Shown piece after piece: positions 4,292 through 6,286 of a stretch of DNA of 6,286 nt. The notes beneath the pieces were generated by a model, which saw only the letters and a list, made by a program, of their open reading frames with translations, ran no database searches and had not been told where the DNA came from. Within the stretch, counting starts at the first letter, position 1. The number at the start of each line of letters is the position of its first letter. The translations under genes were made by a program, and so were the position numbers. The stretch spans positions 1 through 6,286 of the forward strand of contig BAAFSQ010000448.1 in assembly GCA_054661495.1 (NCBI GenBank), written 5' to 3'. Source of the stretch: Zygophlyctis sp. KS116. Lineage: Eukaryota > Fungi > Chytridiomycota.

Positions 4292-4331
4292 AGAGTTACA
4301 TTGAATGTAGTGTTTGAGGTTGAGTTTGTAA

Positions 4332-5166
4332 ATGCAACAAGACGCAACTTCAATACAGGTATGCAAGTCAACTATTAAGCATAGTTTACAGTCGGCAAAC
4401 TCGACGCAGGAATGGCTATTTTACTTTCTTCTAATCATCATTTAATTGAGTTTCCTGCAACCATTTTACCGGTAAAAAACAATAATTTAAAAATTGTCAG
4501 GCAGGTGTCACGACCGGATCTATAGTCAACTTGACAATTGAAAGAAACAAGGATGAAGAGAAGAGGCAAAAGGCTGAATTTGTGAATATTCAAAAGGATG
4601 TGTATGATTTGTTTTCTAGAACTCCTAAAATCCCAATTATCACAATTAAATCTATTACTCAGACTTCTCTAGTAATTAAATGGGAACCGTTAGAGTTATA
4701 TTTTGCTGAACTTCGTGGAATTGATGTCTATAGAAACGGAATTAAATTGGCAGCCACTCCCTCTCCTAACGCTCATTCTGTAAAGTTATCAGGATTAGAT
4801 ATGAATCATGAGTATGAATTATGGATCATTGTTCGAACATCTGCAGGATCATTTTCATCAAATAAGGAATTAGTAAGAACTCATACTATTGATAATCTTA
4901 CTGGACTAAATCCTACATTTGGACTCTTTAATAATCCATCAGGTGTATCAGAACTTGTAGAGATTATTACTAGAATTGGAGCGTCTTATTCTGAAGATTT
5001 AAGTACAGACAATACACACTTGATCTGTACACTTCCAAGAGGACCTAAATTTGAAAGAGCTCAAGAACTCAACATTCCAATTGTTAGTCCTGAATTTTTA
5101 AAAGCCTGTGAATCTAATGGAAAGATTATGCCCTCCCACTTATTTTACATGCAAAGTGAAAATTAA
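4332..5166 (+). CDS. CHS5: Exomer core subunit Chs5 (CHS5_N + FN3 + BRCT); join(4332..4358,4385..4471,4501..5166), 259 aa
   Basis: The spliced N-terminus MQQDATSIQ|[29 protein letters not shown]|[23 protein letters not shown] matches the Chs5 dimerisation motif (TVGKLDA...HHxIEFP..LLP....GSI). FN3 motifs: [37 protein letters not shown] motifs: [25 protein letters not shown]. Confidence 0.93.
4359..4384 (+). other. Spliceosomal intron, 26 nt (cag|gtatgc...ttaagcatag)
   Basis: GTATGC donor and TAG acceptor; joins the ATG 4332 exon in frame to FTVGKLDAG. Confidence 0.85.
4472..4500 (+). other. Spliceosomal intron, 29 nt (gtaaaa...ttgtcag)
   Basis: Required to join IEFPATILP to AGVTTGSIV, which is contiguous in Chs5 homologues; AT-rich with GT-AG ends. 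Confidence 0.93.
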
Positions 5167-5172
5167 TTTTTA

Positions 5173-5769
5173 ATGTCAGAGTTTATACTATTTTTAGATG
5201 AATTAGAGACTCCTGCAACTCCTTTATTCCTAGAATACTTAAAGAGATCTAGATCGCAATACACCTGGGTAGGACTATCATCAACTCAAGCGGAATTTAC
5301 TTCAATTGTTAAGAAATGGGGACTATCGGCCCCCAATTCCTATGTCGATTTATTCGCAGAATGGTCTTGTTTACCCAGTCTACAATCGCTTTATGATCGG
5401 ATCACTGAAATTAGATCGGAGAGTGTTTGCATTGATGATATCTCAAGTTTATGTAATGTTTATGATTGGAAACAAGTACTATTATTCATTAATAATTTGT
5501 GGGACTGGTGTTGTTTAGTAATTTATTTATTTTAATATTAGGGAAATACAAGTCTAGTATTAAGTTGTCATTCAGATCTAACAGGTTCTGAAGATGTCGA
5601 TATCTTTTGTAAGAGTCTACAATACAATTGTACGACAAAAACCAGAATTTCAAAGCTCACCCAAGGACCAGTGGCGGGACTTACGGGACAGATAGAATCA
5701 GACAAGTTGATATTCTATGAATTAAAAGATTCTGGGTTTAGTAAATGGCTGACAAGGGGAAATGTATAG
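5173..5769 (+). CDS. ELP6: Elongator complex subunit 6-like (RecA-fold Elp4/5/6 family); join(5173..5517,5542..5769), 190 aa
   Basis: Motif order resembles ELP6 as I recall it: ILFLDELETPATPLFLEYL; WVGLS...F..IVKKWGL; VCIDDISSL; VLLFI; LVLSCHSD; L.QG....TGQI; FYELKDSG...RG. The second exon (GNTSLVLSCHSD...WLTRGNV*) is absent from the ORF track. Family assignment is by eye, with no HMM search. Confidence 0.75.
5518..5541 (+). other. Spliceosomal intron, 24 nt (gtaatttatttattttaatattag)
   Basis: Phase-0 GTAATT donor and TAG acceptor; removal deletes the in-frame TAA at 5533 and continues into the conserved Elp6 C-terminal half. Confidence 0.85.
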
Positions 5770-5844
5770 CTATTTACTCTTAAAAAATTTATTATTATTC
5801 TAGTATTTTATAGACCATTCCAGTCTCATCTACTGATCTAAGCC

Positions 5845-5910
5845 TAGACTTCCACTGGCCGTTGGACCGCGAGTCATTGGCGTTTGTGGCCACGTGGTGC
5901 CATAGATAAG
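5845..5910 (+). promoter_or_regulatory. Putative polyubiquitin promoter (GC-rich patch with CCACGTGG E-box/G-box)
   Basis: A GC-rich island in AT-rich intergenic DNA: GAGTCAT 5871-5877, ATTGG 5876-5880, CACGTG 5891-5896, GATAAG 5905-5910. These are short motifs and function is inferred only from position. Confidence 0.4.
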
Positions 5911-5914
5911 AAAA

Positions 5915-6286
<372 letters not shown>

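Follow-up and report, generated by a model that had tools for sequence, protein, structure and literature searches.

The genes for Chs5, the core of exomer, and for a putative Elp6, a subunit of the Elp456 ring of Elongator, follow one another on contig BAAFSQ010000448.1 (C448) of Zygophlyctis sp. KS116, whose 6,286 bases are the whole of the stretch analysed here (hereafter the window); the parent assembly comprises 12.7 Mb in 1,175 contigs. Only 6 nucleotides (nt) separate the Chs5 stop codon from the Elp6 ATG, and both codons fall within a 24-nt stretch that opens with GT and closes with AG. An earlier reading of this DNA, made from the sequence only, had seen in this stretch a possible splice switch between a Chs5-Elp6 fusion and two separate proteins. 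We favour, with a probability of roughly 0.6, a plainer interpretation: two separate genes with two separate proteins, lying 6 nt apart through genome compaction, with overlapping transcripts and a GT-AG stretch that is a by-product of chance. According to this interpretation, Chs5 (259 amino acids, aa) and Elp6 (190 aa) would be made as two separate proteins, and extreme compaction of a 12.7-Mb fungal-type genome would have pushed their genes to within 6 nt of each other. The 24-nt GT...AG would be a by-product of coding sequence rather than a working intron. Elp6 would be translated from its own conserved ATG, most likely on an mRNA that begins within the final portion of Chs5 coding DNA; transcripts of Chs5, for their part, would end inside Elp6, giving overlapping transcription units.

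The features of the two genes and of their junction are listed below. Protein searches for spliced genes were made exon by exon, and L002 and L031 are two of the related lineages compared further on.

4332 to 4358, plus strand: Chs5 exon 1, 9 codons, ATG at 4332; L002 has a matching short first exon and intron position
4359 to 4384, plus strand: Chs5 intron 1, 26 nt, GTATGC...ATAG; the L002 intron at the equal position starts GTAATT
4385 to 4471, plus strand: Chs5 exon 2, encoding the CHS5_N domain
4472 to 4500, plus strand: Chs5 intron 2, 29 nt, GTAAAA...GTCAG; position kept in L002, where it starts GTAAGC
4501 to 5166, plus strand: Chs5 exon 3, FN3 and BRCT, TAA at 5164-5166; full protein 259 aa
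5156 to 5179, plus strand: candidate GT-AG stretch, 24 nt, holding both the stop of Chs5 and the start of Elp6; regarded as a pseudo-intron due to chance
5167 to 5172, plus strand: spacer TTTTTA, 6 nt from Chs5 stop to Elp6 ATG; 4, 21, 22, 29 and 46 nt in relatives
5173 to 5517, plus strand: Elp6 exon 1, 115 codons, ATG at 5173; BLASTP E-value (E) 6e-12 to L031 exon 1
5518 to 5541, plus strand: Elp6 intron, 24 nt, GTAATT...TTAG, with in-frame TAA; position common to six lineages
5542 to 5769, plus strand: Elp6 exon 2, 75 codons, stop TAG at 5767-5769; BLASTP E 9e-7 to L031 exon 2; full protein 190 aa

The descriptive part of the sequence-only reading is borne out by the letters themselves. The Elp6 ATG (5173-5175), which opens MSEFILFLDE, stands in the same frame as Chs5, 6 nt past the TAA at 5164-5166, and the room between the genes is indeed too small for a terminator and a promoter. 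The stretch 5156-5179 reads gtgaaaattaatttttaatgtcag, with a TAA 9 nt from its 3' end and a terminal tgtcag; joining 5155 to 5180 would yield ...FYMQ-K-FILFLDE in frame, a product of 444 aa (256 + 1 + 187). A free Elp6 is predicted to begin with the peptide (M)SEFILFLDELETPATPLFLEYLK, and the fusion is predicted to contain ...SHLFYMQK followed directly by FILFLDELETPATPLFLEYLK. The introns chosen for comparison, at 4359-4384 (26 nt), 4472-4500 (29 nt) and 5518-5541 (24 nt), are likewise as described. The GT of the candidate belongs to AGT GAA, a Ser-Glu codon pair in a stretch of Chs5 tail that only the window's species has, and the AG to TCA GAG, a conserved Ser-Glu pair at the start of Elp6.

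Retained introns with a length that is a multiple of three (3n introns) must stop translation, a rule known from Paramecium. Both 5518-5541 and 5156-5179 have 24 nt, a multiple of three, and an in-frame TAA, which fits this rule.

Conservation of the junction in related genomes, to which the sequence-only reading had pointed as a check, is partial: adjacency, stop and ATG are kept, whereas the in-frame GT-AG is not kept in any of five further lineages. A word search with Elp6 exon 1 led to five metagenome proteins and their contigs, and a metagenome scan with the Chs5 alignment returned two loci only, one of which is the more distant L031. The five lineages are L002 (with L003 and L004), L005 (with L006, L007 and L032), L008, L009 and L031; a further metagenome contig (L010) belongs to the window's own species, with 98% identity and an identical junction. 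The window's species, at 98% identity, occurs in ENA assembly ERZ19570925, and JGI samples 3300045541 and 3300045587 contain close relatives. Synonymous codons differ in about 46% of cases when the window is compared with the closer relatives, and the lineages are therefore well separated. As far as the contigs reach, all lineages keep the order DOMON-b561 genes, Chs5, Elp6, ubiquitin. In every lineage a TAA lies 2-3 codons past the last conserved BRCT residues (FYMQ[A/T]E, FYMQSEN or FYIKPN); in four relatives it stands 2 codons past FYMQ, and in the window 3. The Elp6 ATG is kept in all six lineages, before [x]SEF or, in L031, even earlier. Spacer length and frame vary as follows.

Window: spacer 6 nt, frame offset 0
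L002: spacer 22 nt, frame offset 1
L005: spacer 29 nt, frame offset 2
L008: spacer 46 nt, frame offset 1
L009: spacer 21 nt, frame offset 0
L031: spacer 4 nt, frame offset 1

Pairing every GT upstream of the stop with every AG downstream of the ATG, lineage by lineage, gave no in-frame, intron-sized GT-AG across the junction in the five other lineages, so that neither the position nor the frame effect of the candidate is conserved (0/5). The accepted introns behave as introns should by this measure: the position of the Elp6 intron is kept in six lineages at lengths of 24, 26, 22, 28, 25 and 31 nt, always with GTAA...TAG, both Chs5 introns recur at the same positions in L002, and the true introns of both genes all start with GTA. 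One relative carries a stronger look-alike than the window's own, at L009:271-302, where a 32-nt GTAATT...GTCAG (AATGTCAG) scores 14.7 on the intron model described below and would shift the frame. Either its two sites do not stand on one RNA, or the spliceosome ignores them.

Four relatives (L002:3990-4000, L005:590-601, L008:762-774 and L009:283-295) share the word AAATTTT, placed 2-6 nt before the Elp6 ATG, and the window has AATTTTT. This word may serve as a motif for the start site or the initiation context, or be plain AT-rich spacer.

The splice signals of the candidate were set against an intron model drawn from 206 kb of the same genome, namely 200 kb from the 20 largest contigs plus the window. 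Candidate introns were GT...AG stretches whose removal restores a frame extending 50 codons or more to either side, and refinement with a position-weight model left 189 selected introns. Their lengths peak at 25-29 nt, with 24 nt in 8 of the 189 (4%); position +3 is A in 175 (93%) and G in 6 (3%), and the 3' ends are TAG (71%), AAG (21%) and CAG (7%). The preference at +3 is also seen in a model-independent subset, where a single GT-AG solution is possible (A in 31/38, G in 1/38). The candidate, GTGAAA with 24 nt and CAG, possesses GT...AG ends and a length at the low edge of the genome's intron range; its total of 10.6 bits falls at the 10th percentile, as compared to a median of 16.2 for the set. 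Its 5' site is not of the GTA type and ranks in the lowest 1% of model introns. Among 12,330 random GT-AG pairs within long open reading frames (ORFs), about 0.9% score at least as high as the candidate.

Elsewhere in the window, a rare GTG 5' site is seen in a probable 27-nt intron (815-841) close to where the triple-DOMON gene begins. This intron starts GTGAGT, so that its positions +4 to +6 carry the consensus AGT, which the candidate's GTGAAA lacks.

Wider searches point the same way. An Elp6-group profile run against 1.84 billion representative proteins found no Chs5-Elp6 fusion; all 11 matches were proteins of 82-271 aa, with the match near the N-terminus. A literature search for Chs5 together with Elp6 returned one unrelated yeast screen only. 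Two of the distant profile matches belong to deposited genome assemblies. In a more distant genome, GCA_027603945.1 (L033; JADIIU010000014.1, 1234-3600), Chs5 (minus strand) and Elp6 (plus strand) are neighbours in head-to-head orientation, their ATGs 11 nt apart (tttttcaaaaa). Elp6 is hence independent of Chs5 read-through in that genome, each promoter must lie in the coding DNA of the other gene, and the adjacency of Chs5 and Elp6 must be older than their orientation. Elp6 has other neighbours in GCA_025399215.1 (L034).

The deposited gene model for L033:1234-2989 is itself a fusion, joining Chs5 to a NUDIX hydrolase in a 484-aa protein across the Chs5 stop. The Chs5 frame of L033 stops directly after BRCT (...GTFYISKSSF TAA) and a separate ATG, about 170 nt further on, opens the NUDIX ORF; judging from the sequence, annotation has probably fused two genes over a short spacer in this model.

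Tight spacing is also a habit of the whole genome and not special to Chs5-Elp6. We scanned 200 kb for places where the stop of a long ORF is closely followed by the ATG of another long ORF and no good intron explains the arrangement. About 12 such junctions emerged, with spacers no longer than 53 nt, and in 7 of them the spacer is at most 10 nt or the genes overlap (TAAtATG, TAAATG, ATGA, TGATG); scaling up suggests several hundred in the 12.7-Mb genome. The lack of room for a terminator and a promoter thus holds for the genome at large and is not peculiar to this gene pair. At 12 other tight junctions the best in-frame GT-AG scores 6.9 or less, or there is none. With an estimated several hundred tight junctions, a handful of look-alikes at the candidate's level is expected by chance across the genome, and the candidate is only weakly set apart from chance.

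Several observations weigh against two separate genes with a chance GT-AG. The candidate's 10.6 is the highest score among the sampled tight junctions, and its 3' half, with the TAA 9 nt from the end, is a good match to model introns (63rd percentile). The model used to rank it is ab initio and includes some false positives, and low-level splicing of 5156-5179 is compatible with the sequence data. Furthermore, a promoter for Elp6 embedded in Chs5 might have left a mark of extra synonymous conservation, and no clear signal of this kind emerged at the Chs5 3' end: over the last 30 codons, synonymous identity between the window and its relatives is 13/25 versus 83/153 overall, and among the three closest relatives 22/26 versus about 72% overall. 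A scan of 4300-5950 for bacterial-type promoters and terminators gave counts at the level of shuffled sequence; signals of this type have no bearing on a eukaryotic genome.

Chief among the rival explanations is a bicistronic mRNA, with Chs5 and Elp6 on one transcript and two proteins obtained through re-initiation at ATG 5173 after the TAA at 5164, or through leaky scanning. Ribosomes normally re-initiate poorly once they have translated an ORF as long as 259 codons. This difficulty, together with a spacer that conserves neither length nor exact sequence nor any element, a strong frame-shifting GT-AG that the L009 RNA would carry across its junction, and the divergent genes of L033, where Elp6 is expressed with no need of Chs5 read-through, leads us to rank the bicistron below separate overlapping transcripts and to regard it as possible but rather unlikely. 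It does account for a same-strand order and spacers of 4-46 nt kept in six lineages, and for the lack of room for a terminator and a promoter. Fungal precedents also exist: some fungi make polycistronic transcripts on a wide scale (PMC4503453), and a passage of PMC10352335 describes a 9-bp fungal intergenic sequence that supports re-initiation in yeasts and filamentous fungi.

A second rival, which we consider improbable, is noise splicing, whereby the 24-nt stretch is now and then removed from a read-through RNA to give a rare, functionless fusion. The good 3' half of the candidate would allow this, and short, simple introns make look-alikes common, as the 0.9% of random GT-AG pairs that score as high illustrates; the 5' site is very weak, and both sites would have to stand on one RNA. 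It is somewhat less probable still that a recent shrinkage of the spacer by 15 to 40 nt, in this one species, accidentally created a spliceable in-frame mini-intron and a measurable read-through Chs5-Elp6 fusion. If true, the junction would capture a newborn conjoined gene at its origin and offer a natural test of the minimal sequence needed by a tiny-intron spliceosome.

Least probable of all is the regulated switch put forward in the sequence-only reading, where splicing would give a functional 444-aa fusion and retention two free proteins: the GT-AG ends, the 24 nt, the TAA 9 nt from the 3' end and the preserved frame do occur in the window and L010, and 10.6 does lie within the low tail of ORF-restoring intron candidates, but five other lineages have no in-frame route to a fusion, the GTGAAA 5' site is rare and weak, no fusion turned up among the 1.84 billion proteins, the conservation of the stop as well as the ATG is what separate translation predicts, L033 has the genes head to head, and we see no evident rationale for linking a dimeric cargo adaptor of the Golgi with a member of the Elp456 ring.

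On its domain content the upstream gene is unambiguously predicted to encode Chs5, which in exomer partners with ChAP proteins of the Bch1/Bud7/Chs6 type. CHS5_N (PF16892), the N-terminal dimerisation and Arf1-binding segment that marks Chs5, is matched at 4385-4471 with E 1.2e-15 and 57.5 bits, above a cut-off of 39.8. It is followed at 4501-5163 by FN3 and then BRCT, which form the FBE module (PF16893 fn3_2, 5.6e-27; PF12738 PTCB-BRCT, 1e-16; PF00533 BRCT, 9e-12). These Pfam matches agree with the earlier naming of the gene. Chs5 is single-copy in the assembly, and its exon 3 shows 84-88% identity to four closer relatives and 64% to L031.

The identity of the downstream ORF was reached less directly. 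Elp6 proteins are RecA/KaiC-like and form a hexameric ring with Elp4 and Elp5. Its exons do not themselves match Pfam ELP6 (PF09807) above the cut-off, and the only direct match is a weak Elong_Iki1 (21.6 bits by exon, 26.6 bits across the intron). A PF09807 search of the whole genome found nothing, as was also the case in control genomes. We nevertheless accept the predicted protein as Elp6, as the sequence-only reading had it, because the exons of its L031 orthologue match ELP6 and because the group profile retrieves ELP6 proteins only. The L031 gene is syntenic: it follows Chs5 and precedes ubiquitin, it has an intron at the equivalent position, and its exons match PF09807 above the cut-off (exon 1, 5.3e-11; exon 2, 1.9e-8). 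The Elp6-group profile found eight distant proteins among the representative set, all carrying PF09807, with E from 1e-12 to 2e-46. A naming as Elp5, based on the sole direct match to Elong_Iki1, was rejected, as most of these eight clear ELP6 proteins give the same weak Iki1 cross-match; Elp5 is kept as a minor alternative identity for the putative product. Searching the assembly with PF10483 disclosed no separate Elp5-like locus, the sole match being the Elp6 locus. Against PDB sequences, a profile of Elp6 exon 1 gave insignificant matches only, the best of them to FlaH, a KaiC-like ATPase (E 0.17).

Elp6 is short in the window's clade, at 190-191 aa; of the eight distant ELP6 proteins, six have 248-271 aa and the other two 199 and 214 aa. 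It starts some 12-30 residues later than these proteins and is too diverged for Pfam ELP6.

ORF and Pfam reading of the entire window gives six genes, all on the plus strand, in the following order.

ending at 710, plus strand: Trp/Gly/Gln-repeat protein, gene 1 of 6
plus strand: triple-DOMON cytochrome b561 protein, gene 2 of 6
plus strand: single-DOMON b561 protein, gene 3 of 6
4332 to 5166, plus strand: Chs5, gene 4 of 6
5173 to 5769, plus strand: Elp6-like gene, gene 5 of 6
plus strand: polyubiquitin, gene 6 of 6

Between 708 and 5946 the stop-to-ATG spacers measure about 73 (4 if the ATG at 715 is used), 89, 40, 6 and 177 nt, and the contig resembles a single, densely packed, same-strand run of genes. 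An Rfam scan of the window returned no match.

The Chs5-Elp6 junction is ordinary, if extreme, gene packing in a compact eukaryotic genome. It constitutes a comparatively documented case of near spacer-free packing in an intron-rich, fungal-type genome, and one more locus that bears on the choice between overlapping transcripts and true bicistrons in such genomes. It also carries a caution for gene prediction, as tiny AT-rich GT-AG stretches lying over stop/start junctions invite false fusions. A splice switch that joined a cargo adaptor of the Golgi with a subunit involved in tRNA modification would, if true, have no precedent; the evidence points against it.

Human Kua-UEV and TWE-PRIL are transcription-induced chimeras with normal-sized introns and cDNA support. 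The mechanism proposed in the sequence-only reading is of their kind, read-through followed by splicing out of the stop codon of the first gene together with the start codon of the second, whereas the candidate intron has 24 nt, a weak 5' site and no conservation. Another parallel is provided by fusions made through annotation in compact genomes, such as the Chs5-NUDIX model of L033, which rests on the same kind of reading across a stop codon; that fusion is an annotation outcome and not, as in the splice-switch proposal, a biological claim. With fungal polycistrons and IGG re-initiation (PMC4503453; PMC10352335), the window shares same-strand neighbours, a very short stop-to-ATG spacer and two expected proteins. 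As a point of difference, its spacer is conserved neither in length nor in sequence among relatives. The nearest counterparts of two separate, overlapping genes are found in Encephalitozoon cuniculi, Antonospora locustae and nucleomorphs, where, as here, spacers are too short for a terminator and a promoter. In compact microsporidian genomes, transcripts often run into the neighbouring gene, according to a passage of PMC2742732 citing Williams et al. 2005. As in microsporidia and nucleomorphs, unrelated neighbours in the window's genome would be expected to share RNA sequence while their proteins stay separate, and the habit is genome-wide. Overlapping transcripts are reported in microsporidia, while for the window's genome we infer them; and where microsporidia have lost almost all introns, this genome keeps many tiny spliceosomal introns, most often 25-29 nt long.

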